From NCBI GenBank assembly GCA_964035545.1, contig CAXIUT010000113.1:1-22218 (forward strand): a stretch of DNA of 22,218 nt. Direction: 5' to 3'. Shown here piece by piece: positions 1 to 21,024 of this stretch. How positions within the stretch are numbered: the stretch's first letter is position 1; each line of letters opens with the position of its first letter. The notes under the pieces were generated by a model, which searched no databases, was not told the origin of the DNA, and saw only the letters and a program-made list of their open reading frames with translations. This stretch comes from Bugula neritina. Taxonomy: Eukaryota > Animalia > Bryozoa. The position numbers and the translations under genes are program-made.

Positions 1-93
1 CCCAACCCCAACCCCAACCCCAACCCCAACCCCAACCCCAACCCCAACCCCAACCCCAACCCCAACCCCAACCCCAACCCCAACCCCAACCCC
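1..93 (-). repeat. Left telomere (CCCCAA)n
   Basis: Perfect CCCCAA array at window start; Tetrahymena-type repeat; C-strand begins CCCAA. Confidence 0.98.
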
Positions 94-111
94 TAAATAT
101 ATATATCAACA

Positions 112-2715
112 ATGATAATACTTGATTGTAAGTCTATAAATATAAACTTATATATTGAATAAAATGAATAATAACTCAAAAAGATGTCTTAAAAATCAAA
201 TAACTCAAGCTTAACATCCAAAGTATCTAGCAAAAGATCAAAAGATCAATAAAATAACCATCCAAAAGAACATTATGATAACTATTAACACACAATATTT
301 AAACACTTAAGAATAAACAACTAAACAAAAAAAATACCAGTTAAATCACCTTTCGAATAGCATTTCACAACCAAAACACAATAACCCAAATAAAATAAAA
401 TAATTAAACCTAACACCTAGAATAAAACCTATAAATAAAACCAAATAAAATATTTGCTCTTAGATATTGATAGAATAAATAACATACGTAATCTTCATTA
501 ATAACATAAAAATAAATTAGTTAAATTCGGTAGCAAACTCATCTCCTAGTTCAAATTAAATTTATAATGGAAATATATAGAAATATCAAATACTATCAAA
601 TTGTCAACTGCTATTCAATTTATACTCAATTAATAATGGATATAATAGAAAAATACAGTTAAAATTTGGATATCAAAAATCAACCAAAATCGCTTTGAAT
701 AACATATCATCTCCATCATCAAAAAATAATAACCATCGCTCAATTCTAGTCATTTTATTTAAAATAAACAACTTGCATAGTGGTATACAATCGCACAACT
801 TCAATCCTACTTTAAATAGTCCTTCTTTATTGTCTAATATATTCATAAAAAATAATTATTAATAACCACTACTCCATCACTATGCCCAGTATGCACAGCA
901 AAGTAAGTTAAATCATGTCTTTGCCTTAAACCTTTTACATGCTCTTCATGTATTATTGATAAATAAGCTCGTCTTCATAAAATATTTTGCAAATACAGTA
1001 GTTAGTTCATTCTAACACACGAATCAATGCTAATTAACAAAAACTCAAGACTAGGTCTAATAGGTCTCACCAATCCTAACAACCTAAGCTACTTAAATAC
1101 AGCTCTGCAATGTTTACTTGCTATTTAACCTCTAAATAAATATTTTTTATCAAAATAGTACTTGCATGATATAAATGCAGGTAACATAGAAGGATCATTT
1201 GGATAAATATGTGTTAAATACGCATAGTTAGTTTATCATGCCTGGTGCTAGTCTAGTTGTGTGTACAATCCGAAATAATTGAGAAATTCATTGGGTAGAT
1301 TTTGTAATTAATTGCTAAAATAAAATATAAATATAAATAGCTATCAATGCTTCATAATTATTCTTAACTTCTTAAAATAAGATCTTAAAAGAACTTTATC
1401 TCCTTAAAAATAATCAAAATAAGAGAATAAAATAGTCAATAACTCAATAATAGACAAGATATTCACAATACAAATAAAATAATAAATAACTTGCAACTAT
1501 TGCACCGAAAATACAACAACATTCATAACCAATAAAACCCTATAACTAACATCCCTTCCCCCAAGATAGACAAAACACCAATCAAACGTTCTAAACTGTT
1601 TATTTATCCACTAAAACAGCAACCAAAAAAACATCCAACTAATTCTAGACTACTAGCATCTATAGCTATCATAAATATAAAACAAAATAAGATAAATCCT
1701 AAATATAAAAAACCATCGACATCTGGTCTTCTATCTACTGACCACTCATAGCAATATTTAAAGAATTAGTTGGAAATGTAACCTTTATCAGATATTATCT
1801 ACCTTATAACCTAATAAAAAATAATTTTGCTGTCTGGAGTATCCACAATCATAGCTTTCTTCATAAAATTTTGATATAACTATGACAATTCAACTAAGAA
1901 ATAATAAATTAGATTATTATAGTAATATATTCTTCAAAAAACCACTTTTCTTTTGTAAATATAATCGACCCAAATAAGCTAAATAACTCTTCAAAAAAAT
2001 ATTAATCTATCTATACCCAAGAATATACCTCAAATCTAATAAAAATACTATATAAAATTATATAAAACAGTATGTAGCTTGTCCTCCTTTCAAACTGTTT
2101 ATCTCTTCTGAGCATACAGATAGATAGTTTATATAAATAATGCCTTAAGATTAAATAAAACTATCCATCAATAACACTTAAATTATAGCCAAATTTAATA
2201 ATAATAAGTAGTTTGATGTTAATTAGTTGGCAAATACTAGAAAATATGATATATCAGGGCAACAATTTGGGTAGAAAAAGGTTGTAAGCAAAATGGTTGA
2301 TTGTTCTTTATTTGATTGTATTGAAAGTTATACTAAAAATCAAGTTGTTAGCAATTGGAAATGTCCTTAGTGTTTGAAATATAATAGTAATATCAGTAAA
2401 AATATATCAATATATAAAACTTCAAAAGTAATAGTTATTTTTTTGATAAAAGGTTAAAATATGGTTAATAAGATAGATTTTCCATTTTTATTATCAATAA
2501 AACAATAAAAGTAAAACAAACTAGTTGAATATCGACTAAAAGCAGTAGCTAAATATTATAAAAAAACAAATAATCAACCATATGATCACTATTCTATTTT
2601 AGTTAAACATTCTCATATTTGGTATTAAATAAATGATGATAAAATCAAACAAATCAATTCAGGTTAAATATGCACTCAATATGCCAACTATCTAATATAT
2701 TAAATCCTCTAATGA
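112..2715 (+). CDS. Ubiquitin-specific protease (USP/C19, USP4/15-like) with MYND-like Zn finger; catalytic Cys replaced by Ser
   Basis: Single TGA-free frame with TAR=Glu (867 aa from ATG112; alternative start ATG184). Zn-finger-like CPVC..CLC..CSSC..HKIFC at 883-990; Cys box GLIGLTNPNNLSYLNTALQCL; LKEDLKR; CNYC and WKCPEC Zn pair; His box YRLKAV..DHYS..WYEINDD..ANYLIY; stop TGA 2713-2715. Confidence 0.9.
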
Positions 2716-3069
2716 TTAAATATCTTATAATTATAATTATTTCAAATGGTTTTGTGATCAACTTTAAATAGTAGTTTTCTATTTCAAAAATTATTTATAG
2801 ATTAATAAGATTATTGGCAATAAAATTAATTTTTATAAATCAATTAAATGTCCTTTAGAATGAATAATCAACTAAGATGATCTAATGATAAAAAGATTAC
2901 ATTAATACTTGATTTATTTCCTTTTTGGGATTTCTCTGATTTCAAAAAAACCACTTATTTTCACTCTTAGGTCAGAAGTACTAATTTCCATCAAAACAAA
3001 AAGCCAATATTAATATTATTAATATTATTATCTATTAGATAATATATATAGAAGGGTTTTATCATTTCA

Positions 3070-4614
3070 TCATTCATCTCCTCTGATACTCCTTTCGACT
3101 TAAGAATTAAAATGATATAAAGATAACATCATATCATTCGAATTTATTTATCTGATTTTTCCAAGTGTTATTTTCTCAAACTCTTTGTAGTTTTGAAATC
3201 TCTCATTTTTTATATCTTTTTTCACTTCTTTCTCCAGTAAACCAAAAGGATTAGGTATTATATATTTAGAAGGAAGTTTTATAATATCGAAGTTTAACTC
3301 CTAAACACACTATGTAAACTTGGCAGCATTTTCAAGTCTATTTTTATCAACAAATATCAACTTTCTTCTGTTTTTATTATTTTAATTTTAAGATTCAAGC
3401 CTATTTAATAATTTATTAAATTTACTTTGAGAAAAAGAAGAAGAAAATTGAATACTCCAACTGCCTGCACCTTCATGATTTAACAAAAAGTTCATAACAA
3501 TATCTCTTTTCTCATAAGTGTTTTAAGGAATCTCGATCATTTGTCCATTTTTTGCCCACCCTGAGCCTCTACGATTTTCATACTTAAATTTTACCTCATG
3601 ATAGTAGTATATAGGAAATTCACGAGCAGTCAACTTCTTATAGTACTTGCAAAATTATATTTTTTCCTTCATTTATTTATCTCTCTAGATTTTATATGAA
3701 TTATTCTTTGATAATATTTTCTGATAAGTATAACCTTCAGCATATAGGATCTTTTTTATAGTTTAAACACTTAACTATTTTATACTTAATTGATTATTTT
3801 ACTCTTCTAGTTATTTTTTGAAGATAGCTCTTATTTCAGCACATGTCAAAGTTGGATTCCTATGAATTATCCGAATTAACCTTTTAGTCAAGAAAGAATT
3901 AGTCTATCTTTATTACTGTTTCTTCCAAGAATCTATTTGAGAGTAAATATAGTCCAAATTACCATGTTTTCTGTAGACAATCCAAGCATATTATGTCTGT
4001 TATGATGTCAAGCCCATTTGAGCTGATAGTTCTTTAAAACTAAAGTCATAGCAGGTTGTATTAAAATATGCCTCGAATTTCTTTTACGTTCTTTAGTATT
4101 TTTCCTTACCATTCCAACTTATAATATCCTATCCCATATCAATTTAATTAATATAATAATGATCAATTTGATCAGAAGAAGATTAATTAATTGATAATTA
4201 AATATTATAATTAAGATAGTAATCAATCGCTTCAGGAATAGTTCTTATCTCCTCTTATTAGACAAAAGTTTCATTGCTTTTTTATTTTTGATCTATCTAA
4301 ATATCTTCATACTTTATTTTATTTTATTCTTCTTTTAAGTGTTATTCTTTTAAGTGTTATTCTTTTAGATATTATTCTTTTAGATACTATTCTTTTAAAT
4401 TTTCTTATTTTATGCATTTTTATATAGATTCATCTTTGATGAAATCTTATTTATCTTTGCCTTTGAAATAAGATTGTTCTTAGATGCCTTCATCTATGAT
4501 TTAATCTTTTTCATTTGCAGAATCACTTTCGTTTATTAAAACTCTTTTTGTTAGATAATCATTATTTTCTAGTACTTTTAGCATGATTTTTTTTAGAATT
4601 TGATGCTTCATCAT
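3070..4614 (-). CDS. IS630/Tc1/mariner-family transposase-derived protein with degenerate DDE triad (H/D/G) and ~159-aa acidic N-terminal extension; probably domesticated
   Basis: Open 514-aa frame from ATG4614 (internal ATG4137) to TGA3072-3070. HTH-like SFKELSAQMGLTSEQTEYAWIVYRKHG; second HTH-like IIHRNPTLTCAEIR..LSVETIKKILYAEGYTYQK; catalytic-domain motifs IYYYHEVKF..RGSGWAKNG, LIFVDKN and KLPSKYIIPNPFG, with exactly 34 residues between the second Asp and the terminal-Glu position. Confidence 0.8.
4330..4398 (-). repeat. 15-nt coding tandem repeat (~4.6 copies) encoding LKEE[Y/H]
   Basis: Plus-strand units ttcttttaagtgtta x2, ttcttttagatatta, ttcttttagatacta, partial ttcttttaa; in frame within the transposase-like ORF. 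Confidence 0.9.
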
Positions 4615-4788
4615 GATATATCAAAATATTTACTCTTTTTAAATCTATAAATCATTTCTATAAATATGTTGACATATTTATAAATAAGAGATATATATTA
4701 ATAAAATAATAATATGACATCTTCTGAGAAGTTTATCAGTTCACCTGTGTTTTCAATATATAATTTTCATTACATATCTTCATAAATA

Positions 4789-6453
4789 TCATGATAATGA
4801 TAACAACATCTCCTTTATCAAAGCATCAGAAGATTGTTTTTTCTCAAATGTCTAATTGATAACTTTCTTATCTATCAAAGATACACTTCCAGTTATTCTC
4901 AGAAAAGCCTAGAATAGATTTTATGTAAATATAGGCATGCGATATATGAAGGGATCTGAACAGTCTTTCTTGTAATACACAAACACAGGAGTTGAATTGA
5001 AATTTCTAACCCCTTCTGCTTTGTTTCTATCATTGTTAATTCGGTAAAAATCAAGACCAGGATATCTCCTTCTGTTTCTAGCGAATTCTTAAAATTTTCC
5101 TCCAAACTTTTTGCAACTATGGCAATGATGAGAATAGTGAAAGATAACTTTATCGTGATTATCATCTCTTACCTTTTTATAATTACTTCCAACCAAAGTA
5201 CAAGCCCATTCATTTTCGGCCTTCTAACTCTTATAGTATTGGGATTCATTTTTATTCTAACCAGTACTTTATTTGATCCATTTTTGTATCATTTAAGAGT
5301 TTATTTAGTCAACTTTGTTAATAGGATATCTCCATTAATAACTATTTTTAAGAATCTATTTAACTTATTCTTTCTTCAATGGATTTATAGGATCATAAGC
5401 TTTCAATGACATCTTGGAATAGTTGTTCATTTAGATTACCAATGCTGCACTATCAACTTATCCTGAATAATAGATTTATTTATGCATCTGAGAATAAATA
5501 GGTTTTGATAGTTATTTGCATATCTATTCTTATATTTTAGATGTATTTTGGTTTTTGTTTATTAATACATTCAAGACCAACTAATTTGCTTGTAGATCTT
5601 ATTTTACAGGAGGAAAAACAAACACTTCTCTTAGGTTAGAATTAGCTGGAATTAGACAAAATTCTTTTCCACCGATTTTAAAACTCTCAACCTTTTATCT
5701 ATACTCAGGAAGTATATTTGAATTAACAGAAGAAAGCAAATAAATCCCAGAATTTTTATTTCCCACTCCAAGAATAGTTTTAGATTGACTATCTTTAAGA
5801 ACATATTTAGGACACAATCTCTATCTAACTTCATGGGCTTTAAGATAATCATATAACTACTTCTAACTTTTTTATTAATCTTAACCTGGAACTACCACCA
5901 GAGCTGAATATTTTTAAGTATTATTGATAGTAGATAGTTATTAAGAAATGTTTGATATTCTTACCTATCGAATTCCATTGATAGTTTATATCATCTTTCT
6001 CATTAATTGTTTATTACCAAATTTGATTTGATTTCTAGATCTGTTATGATTGATATACGGGTCCAAATTTATAATTCTTTATCCTCTTTCACTGTAAACT
6101 ATCAATATATTTTACAGCTCATCATCATTTGATTGCTCTCCCTTAATAAACAAAAACTAATAATCAGTACTCACTCGACCTTAAGAATATTCCACAAAAT
6201 CTTATGCTATTTTAATCAACTGATTATCAATAAATTCTTATCCATGCAATTCGCATATCAATACAGCTTTCTTGGGATCTGAACCATTTTCAACATATTC
6301 TCCAATGTCACTAATAACCTTAACTTTAGATGGATAGATAGAGCTAACGTCCTTAGAATGCAGAGAAACATAAGGATTAGCTAGTACATGAGATGATATT
6401 ACAAGAGAAAAAGGTAGTAGCCTCTTGAATGATCTTATAAATCTTCTGAACAT
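4789..6453 (-). CDS. Thioredoxin-fold / PDI-like protein with C-terminal CHSC motif and a mitochondrial-type N-terminus
   Basis: 554-aa open frame. C-terminal region YYKSEK..TLVGSNYKKVRDDNHDKVIFHYSHHCHSCKKFGGKFEEFA..FYRINNDRN..TPVFVYYKK resembles the PDI x-linker plus a' domain. N-terminus MFRRFIRSFKRLLPFS is Arg-rich and lacks acidic residues. Confidence 0.75.
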
Positions 6454-6615
6454 CTCAATTATTATTAAATATCTATAAATATCAATTTACATATCTTATT
6501 TAATAGCTAATTGAAATAATACTTAATTTGATTGATTTTTCATAAAAAACATAAAAAATGAAACCATCTTATATTTTATTGCACAATTCATCTTAATAAT
6601 TACATAATTATTAGC

Positions 6616-9600
6616 ATGTCCATTCATAATAGCTACAATCCTTCAGATTACGAATATCTACTTCGTTCTCTTTCAGAAGGAAGTTTAATCGCTAAGGCAG
6701 AAGCACTTAAAAGGTTTCAAATATTAGCAACATCAGATAAAAGACAATTTACAGTCTATTCCAAAAGAATAGTACTGGCTCTACAAGATCTAATAGGCAT
6801 CTAAAAAGTAATTCCCTCTAACTTAGTAATAAATCAATCTACAAACCACCATGCTAGTCCTCGAAATAATCAATCTCAACCCAAAAGACATAGAATATTA
6901 TATCAGAACTAAATTATTGAAGAAAATAATCAGTAATCTTGGTGACGCCAAAGCACAGTTAAGAAAGACATCACATTATTGCATTTTAGCATATATGAAA
7001 ACATATAAAAGTACAGATTAAATATTAGCTTTATATAACTAGCATGGAATCAATAGTCCAGAATCACAACTCAGACAAAAGTCAATCAATTCCTTTCAAT
7101 CCATTATCATCACGTAACCTAAATGTCTAAATTGGAATTCTAGCTAGTTCAAAAAAATATTTTAACAGTTTATTCTTAAACTCAAAGATTAAAGTCATTT
7201 TGTGCAAAAAGCTACAGAACAATGTCTATTAACTCTTGCAAGAATGAACTAATCACACTCTTTTGCTAAAAAATTATCACCATCTGCTGCAGGATTATAT
7301 AGAACATTTTGTGATGCTCAGAGATAATTGGGAAATCTATAAAGTCTACAAATATAAAAATAAAAGTAATATCATAAAAATAACCAATCACTTCCTCCTT
7401 AATCTAGAACATAAAAAATGTCCAACACCAATAGATCTCAACTATAAAGAATGACCAGAGAATAAACCATCAACAAACAAGCTTTAATCCAAAGAATATA
7501 AGAAATCAGAAAGAATTCTCAAACTCCTCATAAGATATAGACTAATAAATATCCATAAAATAATGAGAATAAGTAAAGATAAAAATATAGAAAACCTTCT
7601 CAATCACAAAAGAACCTATCGAAAATGGACGGATAAAAATCAATTATTCGATAGAAAAGTGCCAAAGAACTTCAACCTCTTATTTTTACTACTAAAACAT
7701 AAAAAATATAAAATGTTTTTGGAAAGAAGTTACTCGATGATCTCAAAAATTAAAGAGATTGGAAAGTAAGATTAAATGCTGTTTAATAACTTTAAACTAA
7801 AATACAAATCTACAAAGAAGCTGTTTAAACAGAAGTCCTTGTTAAAAATTTAGTACCTCCTCTAGTCAAACTACTATCAGATTCTAATTTCAAAATAGCT
7901 TCCATCACTCTTAAAGTCTTCTAATAATTACTAAGAATTCCATCAATTCCTTTATAAAGTCTAGCTCCTCAGGTCGTAGATAGACTAGGAGATGGAAAAG
8001 TAGCTCTTAGACAAGGAGTTGCTCGTCTAATTCGATCTTAGTATTTTAGACTCTACAATCCTATCTGGATTGAATCTCTTCTCGACTTATTAACCAAAAC
8101 AACCAGTTCCTCTCTAAAATAATAAATTTTAGGGATATTCAATCGACTCTACTAAGATGAAGTATTAAAATATCCTTTTTAAAAGATATTAGAATCAGTA
8201 TGTCCGTTGATGGACGATAGTAAAACAAAAATAAAGATAAAAGCCTTAGATTTACTCGTTCAAATAGCAACTGCTACAAATAAAATTGATATTAGCAAAA
8301 GAATCCTCTCAACCAAATTGAATCAAGTTTATTTTGAAATGTTTATTTAAAAAGTAACATTTTAGATAAAACAAAGAGTCACTCCAAGGATAGTAGAATC
8401 ATAGCCTCCACCCACTCGAGGAGAAGGTCGATCAATATCATTTCCATCTCTAAAAAAACATAAAAGTATATTCATCATCAATTAGATTCAGCAAATAATA
8501 CTACCACAAGTTCACTGAAGAAGTATGCCAAAACAATTGATACTAAACCTATCAAAAGAGGTTTATCCGATATGGGTAATAGTTATTTTATGTAGGTGAG
8601 AAACATGATATGAGTATTAATACTCCTGAATAGATAACTCCTTTCTAACCTTTGATAGTTAAAGAAAGAACTGTACTTACTCCAACATAAACTATCAGAA
8701 AAAAACCTGTTAGAAATGTTAAAAGAAGAATACAAAAAACTTTATAATCAAAACTATCCATTAATAATACTGCTGAGTCATAAGGTTTACGACCTTTCTC
8801 AGATCCATAAAAATAACTAAAAAGTCTTCCTTCTGATCTAAAATCATAAAATTGGCAAGTTTCTTTTGATGCTCTTACTAAATTTAGAAGAATCCTTAAA
8901 TTTCATCCAGATATTCTTATTCCAACCATAGCCAGACCTCTAGCTCTTGAAACAGCCAAATTAATTGATAGTCTTAGATCATCTTTGAGTAAAAATGCAG
9001 TAATAACACTTGCTGAATGCACCTAAGTTCTTGGAAGAACACTTGATCCGTAGTTAGATGGTATTTTTTCTCGTTTAATGAGGAAGACTTTAGACACTAA
9101 TTCATTTATTTCATAATAAGTAAAGAAAACATTGATATTAATAGGTACAAATTGTAATTAATCGAAAGTTCTATCTATTTTACATAATTATCATTCATCT
9201 CGAGCAAATCCTATAAAAATAAATATAGTTTGTATTTTATAAGCAATGTCAGCTCTTCAAAGAATATTATAGAAATAAATATAAAGAATTATATCTATTT
9301 TAGTTGATTTTATGAGTTAAGGAGCTCTTTAAATTAGATAAAGATCAAAAAATCTTCTTTCTAAATTAGTTTAAGGAGATAAATTAGGTAAACTAATATC
9401 TCTCATTCCAGCCAATATTTTATAAAAAATAAGAAAAAAATAAAAAAATTAAACCATAATCCCTAAAATAGTTAAATAGCCTTCTAGCAGTGCAATGTCT
9501 AACTATAAATAATAATAGATATCGCATAAATAGGAACCCGCCATCAAAAAGAAGAAAATAACTTCTTTCCCAAAATAATTCTAAGAACTATAATAACTAC

Positions 9601-10217
9601 TACTATCATGCTAAACTACTTAATGGAAAGCAAGACAGTCATCTCTATCGAAAATAGCTTCAATAACTAAAGCCTTTCCATCATAACTCACACAATACCG
9701 GCTCAATACTCGTATCATTTAGATTTTTGCAAAACAATCTAATGATCCCAATTCGAAAGTAGCCATCTCTGCTCTAACTCTCTTCATACAAATAGTTCCT
9801 CTTATCCCAAGAATTATCTAAACTAATCTAAGTGTCATATGCAATGAAATATTCAACTGCTTTGCTTCTCATAAAGCCTAAGTAAGAGAACTTTCTTTGA
9901 GCCTTTTTGATCATATTTCGTCTAAAGTATAGAATTGGATGCTTGTGCAACATCTATGCACTGGTGTACTATATGGTTCAGCAAAAGGGAAAGTTAATAT
10001 TTTAGTAAAGTTGATTAAAATTTTATCAACAGCTTTCAAATAGAAAAAGAATGCAATTTAGAAACATATATACTCTTTGATAAATAAGCTATCAGATTAA
10101 CCTAAAAGTTAAATAACTCCAGTAATCAGATAACTCATCAGCATAACAATAAATTTATGGAAATAGGAAGCCTACTCAGCTCTAAAGCAATCAGCTAAAA
10201 ATTTAATTTCATAATGA
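6616..10217 (+). CDS. TOGARAM1: Multi-TOG/HEAT microtubule-binding protein, TOGARAM1/FAM179/Crescerin (CHE-12)-like
   Basis: About 1180 aa after removing introns 6808-6826, 8466-8485 and 8576-8595. Four TOG-like blocks: NLGDAKAQLRK; DWKVRLNAVEEL..LLSDSNFKIA..RLGDGKVALRQ; LRPFSDPE..ENWQ..RRILKFHPDIL..SLRSSLSKNA; EWKARQ..DPNSKVAISAL. Confidence 0.8.
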
Positions 10218-10322
10218 TAACAACTCTGATCAGTAGTATTTTAATAATTCTTTTATAACTACTTAATATATCTAAATCCTCATAATATACTAAATATGAT
10301 AAATCTAGTTGATTATTATACA

Positions 10323-10421
10323 GGGGTTGGGGTTGGGGTTGGGGTTGGGGTTGGGGTTGGGGTTGGGGTTGGGGTTGGGGTTGGGGTTGGGGTTGGGGTT
10401 GGGGTTGGGGTTGGGGTTGGG
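10323..10421 (+). repeat. Telomeric tract (GGGGTT)n: right end of molecule 1, internal in this window
   Basis: 99-nt perfect array 105 nt after the TOG gene stop; ends TTGGG and abuts mid-CDS sequence. Confidence 0.97.
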
Positions 10422-11991
10422 TCCATCAAGAATCCTATAATTTTTACATGTTTTCCAATCATAACAATATATTTTGCCTCTCTAATCCCCTGATAACAAA
10501 TATTGACCATCATAGCTAAAATCAATTCCACATGCATAGCCAGCGCAGTAATGACTAGCAAATTTTTTAGCTCTCAACCTTCTAAAATTACCCCCTTTAT
10601 TCTAATATATAACTATCTGATTGTCAGAAGACTGTCCAGCAAAATACTACCCTGAAGGATGCATAGCAGTTGATGTAATAGTATGCATCTATGGTTCTGA
10701 AACATGTCTAGTTACTACTGGTACTCCATACTACCAAATAAATAATTTTTTATCATCAGAAGAACTTATAAATTTATTCTATTAGATAAATGTCAACGTA
10801 TTCACTGTACCCAAATGCTGATTGTATTACATTGTCTTCTGACCCGTCCTCAAATCGAATTGATAGATCTTCTTAGAACTTGAACCCACAAGAACGATAT
10901 TCGGGTAATGTTACGAAGGATGGTATTTCAATACAAATGGTATTCTCTTCAGATTGTATGTCGACAATACTATATTGAGATAGATAAATACCTTTGCCAT
11001 ATTAAGTATCCCAGTTAAGAACCTTATTATCAAAGGCGCAACTTACAAAGTTTTTGCCATTGTGAGAAAATTGAATATCTCGCACTGCTTTAGTATGACC
11101 AATATAAGAATGAGCACATGTCTTGTTTTTAACGATATCAAATAAATGAACCTTTCCCTCAGGATTTCCTAGTAAAAAGAAATGACCCACCTTAGGATAA
11201 AATCTCACCACCTGAAATCCCTATTTATTACTACCCACCCAACTAAACACTTCTTTCTTTGGTAAGTAACAGTTATCCCCACCTCGACGGTAATTAACTG
11301 GAGGTTCAACATAGCTGAGGCCTTTGTAGTCTTAAAAACTTCCCCAGTGAAAAGTAGAATAAGGTTAGAAGTTTTTTTATTGGATTTTAGCTTATTAAAT
11401 TTTGATTTGTTTAGTTTATTAGGCTTTAGCTAGTTGTTATTTTTGTTAAGCCGTAATAGCTCCATTATATAAATTTTATCCATAGCCTCCCCAAGGTCCT
11501 TGAAAATCATGAACAGCTGAGCCTTTAACTCTCATTTCTTTATACATTTTAGTTATTTATTTTTTATTTTTATTCGTGGTTTTTCCATAAAGTTTTTGAT
11601 AAAATTCTTAATGTTTCTCATCAATAACTTCTCCTTCTTGCTCTGTTCTTTCTTTAAACTATTTAAGTTTACTACTAAAAACCAAACTTTTAGCATTGAT
11701 ATCAGGATCATTGCAATACCCATTTCTTCTAAATTTATACATCTGCTCATTAAATTCATGAACAGGAAGAGAATAATTTTCTGTCTGGCAAGTCAATAAT
11801 GTTTTTGATCGATCTGCCTCCTAAAATGATACAAAATTGTATGCCTTCTTTATTTCATCATGTTTCTAAACCACCAATTAGTAAATATCAGTTTGAGGAT
11901 TTATATTCACATCGATCTTATCCACCTTCAACTTCTTAGTAAGTCTATCCATCTAGTTTTCACTATTGCTCTCGACCTATGATTCAGACAT
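10422..11991 (-). CDS. PRP17: Pre-mRNA splicing factor Prp17/CDC40 (WD40); 3'-truncated at the telomere junction
   Basis: Motifs FQGPWGGY, DYKGLSYVEPP, CYLPKK, GHTKAVRDIQFS, WDTEYG, EYNQHLGTVNT, SSDDK..IWEYGVPV, AGYACGIDFS, YDWKT. Intron 10970-10991. Ends at ILDG with no stop; roughly the last 30 aa of the final WD repeat are missing. Confidence 0.95.
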
Positions 11992-12047
11992 GATCTATTA
12001 TAAATAATTGAAAAAATTATATCAATTCTATCGATAATTATGAATCA

Positions 12048-12176
12048 GGGGTTGGGGTTGGGGTTGGGGTTGGGGTTGGGGTTGGGGTTGGGGTTGGGGT
12101 TGGGGTTGGGGTTGGGGTTGGGGTTGGGGTTGGGGTTGGGGTTGGGGTTGGGGTTGGGGTTGGGGTTGGGGTTGGG
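12048..12176 (+). repeat. Telomeric tract (GGGGTT)n: right end of molecule 2, internal in this window
   Basis: 129-nt perfect array 56 nt upstream of the PRP17 ATG; ends TTGGG and abuts mid-CDS sequence. Confidence 0.97.
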
Positions 12177-19550: not shown

Positions 19551-19860
19551 ATAACTTAGTAGGATTTATTATGATTAGAAATATCTAACTTTGAATTTCA
19601 AATTTTATATTTAAAATGATTCATATACCAAAAGTGACAATAATGATATCATATTGTTCTGAGTCTTAAACTATTGATGTGGAAGTTTTTCGAGTTCTTA
19701 GATAATAATATTTAATAAAATGATTAATTATGAATAGATTTGATTTTTAAACACTTAAATAATATTAAAATCAAGAAATAATCACCATTAAAACTTATTT
19801 TTTATTATTATTTATATTTAATGAATTAAGTTTATGACTATTCATTTTTTTGACATTTAA

Positions 19861-21024
19861 ATGTAAGATTTAACTCAAAAAGTAAACTCCCTTTCAATCA
19901 AATAACAAAAACCCATCATTTTTCATCATCCAGATACTCTCCTGCATCAATCTTCAAAAAAACACCCAGAACAACCCGCAAGAGTAAAATCTATCCTGCA
20001 CCACCTTTAAAAAGATTCCTCTCTTATCTTCAAAAACATTCAATAACTAAAATAAATAATAACCACATAAGAACTTTAAGTCTTAGCAGCATAACTACAA
20101 AGTTCAAGATATCTATAATTCATCCAAGAAATGTGGGACCCAAATACCACAAGAACTGAAATGTACATCAACACTGATACCTACTACAGTAAATATACCT
20201 ATCAATCTACTCTAGCTGCAGCTAAAACTACAGTAGCCGCAGTTTCTCATGTTCTGTCAAATAAATAGACTAAATCTTTTGCAGTTATCCGACCTCCAGG
20301 ACATCACAGTGGACTCAAAATGCAACCTCATGGATTCTCTTTTTTGAATAATATCGCACTTTCAGCAGTCAAAGCCATCAAAGATAAAAAGGCAGCAAAG
20401 ATAGCTATAGTCGATTGGGATGTTCATCATGGTGAAGGCACTCAAAATTTATTCTATCAAAGAGATGACATTCTTTATATATCATTGCATCGCTTTGATA
20501 AAGGAAAATTCTTTCCTCATATTCCTCAATCAGGCAGTAACTACATTGGATAAGGAAAAGGTAAAGGATTTAATATCAATATTTGCTGGAATTTACCATA
20601 AAAGAAACCAGGATCAACCAGATAAGCAAATCAAACAGTTGGAGATCGATAATATCAAGAAGCTTTTCAAAGAATAGTCCTACCAGTTCTTAAATAATAC
20701 AATCCATAGTTAATTTTAGTTAGTTGCGGCTTTGATTCTGCAGATGGAGATCCGATAGGAGATCTAAAACTAACTTCGAATGGATATTTATACATGATAA
20801 AGAAATTAGTTGATCTAAACAAACCTATTTCTGTTGTTCTAGAAGGAGGTTATAATCTTTAAGTTCTTTAATGGGGAAGTTAGGCAGTCATCAGAGGTTT
20901 AAAAGGTGTCTAACCATAAAAGTAAAATGAAAAAAACTAATGCAACTAAATAGGTCTAGAAGGAATATAAACCAGTATGAAATTTATTTCCTAATTTTGG
21001 AAATGTTTATCTTAAAAATCATGA
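19861..21024 (+). CDS. Class II (HDA1/HDAC6-like) single-domain histone deacetylase, 387 aa
   Basis: HPEQPAR, DTYY, IRPPGHH, GFSFLNN, VDWDVHHGEGTQ, YISLHR, FFP, GEGKGKGFNINI, SCGFDSADGDPIG, LEGGYNL, FWKCL. No frame-breaking intron; alternative in-frame ATG at 19834. Confidence 0.95.

Follow-up and report, generated by a model that had tools for sequence, protein, structure and literature searches.

Organization of the locus

The window analyzed here is a stretch of 22,218 nt that starts with a telomeric (CCCCAA)n array and ends with (GGGGTT)n. Near its left end, the minus strand carries a long open reading frame (hereafter the ORF), whose predicted protein resembles transposases of the IS630/Tc1 superfamily (Table 1). 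A first-pass annotation of this DNA had placed the ORF among ordinary genes, and genes for an HDAC, an inosine-uridine nucleoside hydrolase, and a WD40 protein were indeed found in the window. In the upstream neighbor (4789–6642, minus), the stretch HHCHSCKKF provides a CxxC motif whose context is thioredoxin-like, and Pfam searches with the stop-free pieces of this gene gave no match.

Table 1 Positions of the ORF, its parts, and the surrounding features in the window
Feature	Position	Strand	Remarks
Left telomere, (CCCCAA)n	1–93		Window start
3′ spacer	2716–3069		354 nt between convergent stops; no terminal inverted repeat
Transposase-derived ORF	3070–4614	minus	514 sense codons and TGA; IS630/Tc1 superfamily
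Region significant with the IS630 profile (aa 269–465), including the DDE_3 (RNase H-like) core	3220–3810	minus	92-sequence profile
Gly458 (GGT), at the catalytic Glu	3241–3243	minus	Aligned on IS630 E297, moderate posterior
Asp423 (GAT), second catalytic Asp, kept	3346–3348	minus	Aligned on IS630 D261
His339 (CAT), at the first catalytic Asp	3598–3600	minus	Aligned on IS630 D181, high posterior
HTH-like putative DNA-binding region (aa 179–300)	3715–4080	minus	hhalign collinearity with IS630 HTH_23/HTH_32/HTH_33
N-terminal extension (aa 1–178), K/E-rich	4081–4614	minus	No IS630 counterpart; hhalign alignment begins at aa 177–179
Tandem 15-nt repeat, ~5 in-register copies	4310–4414	minus	Encodes KE(E/Q)YL / KE(E/Q)HL pentapeptides
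5′ intergenic spacer	4615–4788		174 nt, extending to the upstream gene's stop; no terminal inverted repeat
First (GGGGTT)n array right of the ORF, ~16 units	10322–10421	plus	Possible true right chromosome end

The earlier description of the window as a telomere-capped chromosome holds only in part. Telomere repeats are present at both ends of the window, but two internal (GGGGTT)n arrays break the 22-kb unit. The second of these arrays (12047–12176, ~21 units) has its G-strand on the plus strand, and unique sequence directly follows each array. The window is composed of three head-to-tail units, the middle one of which has a single gene, encoding the WD40 protein (10756–12021, minus). Because of the two internal arrays, the properly capped unit that bears the ORF may be 1–10421. 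The arrays themselves could reflect an assembly or amplification chimera, alternative forms of telomere addition, or genuine interstitial repeats.

Genetic code and host

TGA is the sole codon that behaves as a stop in this genome, and the meaning of TAA and TAG was assessed with the HDAC gene. GAA and GAG make up 2.2% of the HDAC codons, TAA and TAG 7.0%, and CAA and CAG 3.8%. Since the Glu content of HDAC is normal only when TAA and TAG are read as Glu, this assignment is favored over Gln. The BLOSUM sums of HDAC against six homologs (five bacterial and one archaeal) were slightly higher for Glu than for Gln, with homologs too divergent to decide between the two. TAA and TAG likely encode Glu, as in the peritrich-type code, and not Gln. 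Judging from this probable Glu code, the source of the ORF is probably a ciliate of the peritrich group. Depletion of GAA and GAG (0.9–6.4%) beside abundant TAA and TAG (5.5–8.9%) was seen at 19825–21024 of the window and in other long ORFs.

Reading frame and N-terminal extension

The ORF is uninterrupted over its 514 sense codons and ends with TGA, as the first-pass annotation had stated. Its sense codons include 31 TAA and 8 TAG, 39 in total. The terminal TGA is the only one in the frame, while 12 and 27 are present in the other two frames of the same strand. When the 2-kb region was shuffled 3000 times, 0.5% of the shuffles had a TGA-free run at least 516 codons long (P = 0.005). In this AT-rich genome, long TGA-free frames are fairly common by chance, and the median longest run in the shuffles was 262 codons, so that the openness of the frame by itself is only moderate evidence.

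The codon composition of the ORF resembles that of the host genes. Codon frequencies of the ORF and the other long host ORFs are correlated at 0.92, and the density of TAA and TAG is 7.6 per 100 codons, within the host range of 5.5–8.9. With a codon model of the host, the in-frame coding log-likelihood ratio (LLR) is positive for both halves of the ORF, and both flanks of the ORF score at or below 0.

The N-terminal extension spans 159–178 residues. For codons 1–159, the LLR is +20.2 in the reading frame and −13.2 and −38.3 in the other two frames. Since the in-frame score is positive and those of the other frames and the flanks are not, the extension is probably translated. The net charge of the extension is −25 when TAA and TAG are read as Glu and −8 when they are read as Gln. 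The in-frame extension of 159 residues proposed earlier is supported by the coding score, but its acidic character (net −25) depends on the Glu reading.

Homology to IS630/Tc1 transposases

The IS630/Tc1-superfamily (DDE_3) origin proposed for the ORF was supported by BLASTP, by IS630 profiles, and by hhalign. The test sequence, chosen beforehand, was an annotated IS630 ORF of the Shigella plasmid pCP301, in which Pfam maps HTH_23 to residues 28–73, HTH_32 to 56–136, HTH_33 to 108–157, and DDE_3 to 177–315. BLASTP of the full ORF translation against this single protein gave 36.6 bits (E = 9e-7) and aligned aa 274–415 of the ORF on residues 120–255 of IS630. At the first catalytic motif, the alignment keeps the register, with PIYYYHEV of the ORF on PVFYEDEV of IS630.

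A profile of 87 IS630 proteins matched the ORF with 18.3 bits (E = 4.5e-8 for one target). Among the 147 ORFs of at least 80 aa in the window, the ORF was its only match (E = 6.7e-6; runner-up, 2.6 bits), and the maximum among 1000 shuffles of the ORF protein was 8.1 bits. When five distant IS630-family members (21–26% identical to IS630) were added to make a 92-sequence profile, the score rose to 26.8–27.5 bits (E ~1e-10 with Z = 1). This profile gave E = 1.9e-8 among the 147 window ORFs, with a runner-up ORF of 3.2 bits, and its best shuffle of 1000 reached 10.9 bits. In pairwise phmmer comparisons, the Xenorhabdus and Salmonella IS630 members aligned collinearly with the ORF (E ~3e-4 to 5e-4), and the remaining three of the five distant members gave no significant match to it.

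hhalign extended the similarity to 303–305 collinear columns, which place aa 177–509 of the ORF on residues 28–346 of IS630 (E = 1.7e-5 to 4.8e-5), and the ORF follows IS630 without frameshifts. A DDE-only sub-profile scored 15.7 bits against the ORF. Of the 40 hits retrieved with language-model features of aa 321–363, 36 pointed to DDE_3/IS630 clusters, which we take as a lead only. Pfam searches with stop-free pieces of the ORF of up to 50 aa, which are short and diverged, gave no match. These alignments give good support for homology of the ORF to the IS630/Tc1 superfamily in two parts, namely the second HTH region and the RNase H-like core. For the narrower DD34E/Tc1 label that the ORF had been given, the comparison covered bacterial IS630 only, in which the D-to-E spacing is 35 and not 34.

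The two HTH-like segments noted in the first-pass annotation are collinear with IS630 but do not reach a significant score by themselves. Residues 269–300 fall within the significant IS630 profile alignment, and neither of two HTH-only sub-profiles was significant against the ORF. Since these separate sub-profiles are not significant, the assignment of the HTH segments rests on collinearity with IS630.

Degenerate catalytic site

The motifs and residue positions given in the first-pass annotation all match the sequence, and the IS630 alignments bear out its reading of the active site, in which the first catalytic Asp is replaced by His, the second Asp is kept, and the Glu 34 residues later is replaced by Gly. 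In place of an intact D, D, E/D triad, the ORF has His339, Asp423, and Gly458. The context of Gly458 is NPFG in the ORF and N-x-I/V-E in IS630, as aligned by both hhalign and the diverse profile, and the spacing between Asp423 and Gly458 is 34 residues compared with 35 in IS630. The DNxxH signature after Asp423 is lost, and the ORF reads DKNRLE.

Contigs from three runs (X1, the main DNA run, and X3 and X5), which are independent read sets from three studies, cover these codons. Among the differences listed, none falls on the codons of His339, Asp423, and Gly458 in X1, on those of His339 and Gly458 in X5, or on that of Gly458 in X3.

DDE enzymes cut DNA by a two-metal mechanism. Because catalysis depends on this mechanism, the replacements at two of the three positions predict its loss, and we infer that the ORF protein would be incapable of two-metal DNA cleavage or strand transfer. 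The ORF protein is probably catalytically dead.

Mobility, copy number, and constraint

The flanks of the ORF had been described as free of terminal inverted repeats, and a shuffle test agrees with this description: no such repeats were detected in the two flanks, where the best inverted match was equaled by 13% of shuffles and the inverted pairs seen were AT-rich and imperfect only. Copy number was assessed from contig depth. In X1, the depth is 72–85 and uniform over the ORF, the neighboring gene, and beyond. Since the depth of the ORF equals that of the adjacent gene, the ORF looks single-copy, with no sign of extra copies in this crude measure, which uses contigs and not reads.

Between the window and X1, the differences listed in the ORF fall on at least nine sites, six of them synonymous and three nonsynonymous. 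Under neutrality, this synonymous bias has a P value of 0.002–0.05, depending on the assumed transition bias and drawn from a small sample. The differences listed in the neighboring gene comprise nine synonymous and five nonsynonymous ones. The small polymorphism sample of the ORF resembles that of a constrained gene.

Search for relatives and transcripts

Searches for closer relatives used pieces of the ORF. Stop-free pieces of up to 50 aa gave nothing meaningful against PDB sequences, plasmids (tblastn), or, in a first query, the ESM Atlas. phmmer with a 43-aa piece of the core against 1.84 billion representatives returned no true relative, in a search that relatives below about 50% identity may escape. 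Its sole hit, an unrelated subtilase with InlB B-repeats, was rejected. A metagenome scan with a 50-aa piece matched 487 patterns, of which 0 were confirmed. No RNA run was found to contain the ORF sequence, and an RNA-like run covered 0 of 5.9 kb, neighboring genes included, and is uninformative for the ORF.

Comparison with known systems

Compared with bacterial IS630, the ORF shares the order of the motifs, the collinear arrangement from the second HTH region to the RNase H-like core, and a nearly equal D-to-E spacing. On the other hand, the identity is ~20%, two catalytic positions of the ORF are occupied by His and Gly, DNxxH is lost, and the ORF has no inverted repeats and carries an extra N-terminal extension of ~170 residues. 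The ORF also belongs to a eukaryotic host with a ciliate code.

Oxytricha TBE and Euplotes Tec elements are Tc1/mariner-type transposons that are multicopy and germline-limited and have terminal repeats and intact transposases. They share with the ORF a DDE_3-type transposase domain family and a ciliate host. In contrast, the ORF is apparently single-copy and somatic, has no transposon ends, and has a probably dead site.

PgmL of Paramecium, which is derived from piggyBac, and CENP-B/Abp1, which derive from pogo (Tc1/mariner-related), are proteins in which the catalytic site is degenerate and the DNA-binding part persists. The ORF likewise combines a degenerate catalytic site with a putative, probably retained DNA-binding part, and its possible acidic region would find a parallel in the acidic region of CENP-B. 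PgmL comes from another superfamily (piggyBac, DDE_Tnp_1_7), whereas the similarity of the ORF is to IS630 (DDE_3).

The ORF had been proposed as a new domesticated transposase, and the word "new" was an overstatement, since DDE_3 genes encoded in the macronucleus, none with an assigned role, were already described in Stylonychia (PMC4122937), Tetrahymena and Paramecium (PMC3558436), and Blepharisma (PMC9942806). Stylonychia has three DDE_3 genes on telomere-bearing contigs (PMC4122937). The Tetrahymena DDE_3 protein TTHERM_00227320 is induced early in conjugation, and the Paramecium protein is GSPATP00034752001 (PMC3558436). In Blepharisma, the DDE_3 genes lack terminal repeats, have complete triads, and are developmentally induced, and the same paper states that further somatic transposase families, whose role is unknown, occur in all ciliates (PMC9942806). 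Compared by description only, the ORF resembles these macronuclear genes in its somatic location and in its Pfam-level family. The Blepharisma genes are like the ORF in that transposon ends are not reported for them, but their triads are complete and that of the ORF is degenerate. Other ciliates' somatic DDE_3 genes have been proposed as domesticated.

A candidate domesticated transposase

We consider the ORF to be a host gene that no longer moves, apparently exists in a single copy, and descends from a transposase of the IS630/Tc1 superfamily (DDE_3). It is kept in a ciliate macronuclear genome, most likely because its product was domesticated for a non-catalytic role in DNA binding or as a scaffold, and we give this reading a probability of about 0.55. 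Apart from its novelty, the earlier proposal of domestication is consistent with the DDE_3 origin, the replacement of two catalytic positions, the lack of terminal inverted repeats and extra copies, the somatic location, and the host-like codons. If functional, the protein would be a non-catalytic DNA-binding or scaffold protein, like inactive PgmL or CENP-B. In such a protein, the HTH region may bind DNA, possibly at the termini of related elements in the germline. The RNase H-like core, although dead, may provide a platform for dimerization or partner binding, and the K/E-rich, acidic N-terminal extension may contact other chromatin proteins.

The main rival to domestication is a persisting, non-functional relic, a transposon copy that lost its ends and catalytic residues, escaped germline-limited elimination, and persists in the macronucleus, its frame still open by chance or owing to the recency of the decay. 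We regard this as possible but somewhat unlikely. The degenerate triad and the lost DNxxH signature would be expected of a relic, and the frequency of long TGA-free frames at such a composition is in its favor, as are the lack of orthologs in the 43-aa and 50-aa piece searches and the lack of expression evidence, from an RNA-like run that missed the neighboring genes too. However, the 514 codons are open and collinear with IS630 without frameshifts, the differences between the window and X1 are biased to synonymous sites like those of the neighboring gene, and the host-like in-frame codon usage continues into an extension that is not part of the transposase. Furthermore, all of the sequences found are far removed from the ORF, a divergence that points to an old gene and not to recent decay.

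Two further explanations concern what the protein might do. An inactive family member expressed in the soma could, much like truncated or inactive transposases that serve as repressors, repress related germline transposons or compete for their ends without belonging to the DNA-elimination machinery of the host, which would fit the probable retention of the DNA-binding region beside a dead catalytic site; competitive "taming" by DNA-binding, transposase-derived proteins has been raised as a possibility for Blepharisma (PMC9942806). This repressor role seems quite unlikely in its specific form, and nothing separates it from domestication in general. A transposase or nuclease that is still active through substitute residues, such as His339 with nearby Glu461 or Glu463, is highly improbable. 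Asp423 and a GWxxxG-like motif are kept, and acidic residues occur three and five positions past Gly458, but the substitution of the first Asp falls on a position aligned with high confidence and DNxxH is lost. Moreover, the lack of terminal inverted repeats and the depth equal to that of the neighboring gene give no visible sign of mobility.

In ciliates, tamed transposases eliminate DNA that derives from transposons, and, to our knowledge, only piggyBac-derived ones have proven roles in this process so far. Under the domestication reading, the ORF adds another lineage, probably a peritrich one with a Glu code, in which a DDE_3 copy is probably inactive and apparently constrained, and it is an annotation-level candidate for a second transposase superfamily recruited as a non-catalytic partner. 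A role of the ORF in programmed DNA elimination is speculative and one possibility among several. It is also conceivable, if unlikely, that dead IS630/Tc1-derived proteins with acidic extensions form a peritrich-specific family and act as DNA-recognition or scaffold subunits in IES excision or in chromosome fragmentation and telomere addition. Such a family would be a functional analog of PgmL from a different transposase superfamily.

Occurrence in other read sets and depth profile

A near-identical ORF sequence is present in runs from the three studies. X3 and X5, which come from two other studies and are filed under two other organism labels, contain low-depth, near-identical contigs of 151 nt. 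We considered these contigs as orthologs and rejected them, since near identity points to the same ciliate being present in those samples.

In X1, the contig word depth changes near position 2700, from ~17–25 on the left (1000–2700) to ~72–85 on the right (2900–6900). Small indels are found in the spacer at 2724–2733, and two allelic contigs occur near 2200. The depth step may stem from the splitting of alleles or from chromosome forms that differ in copy number.
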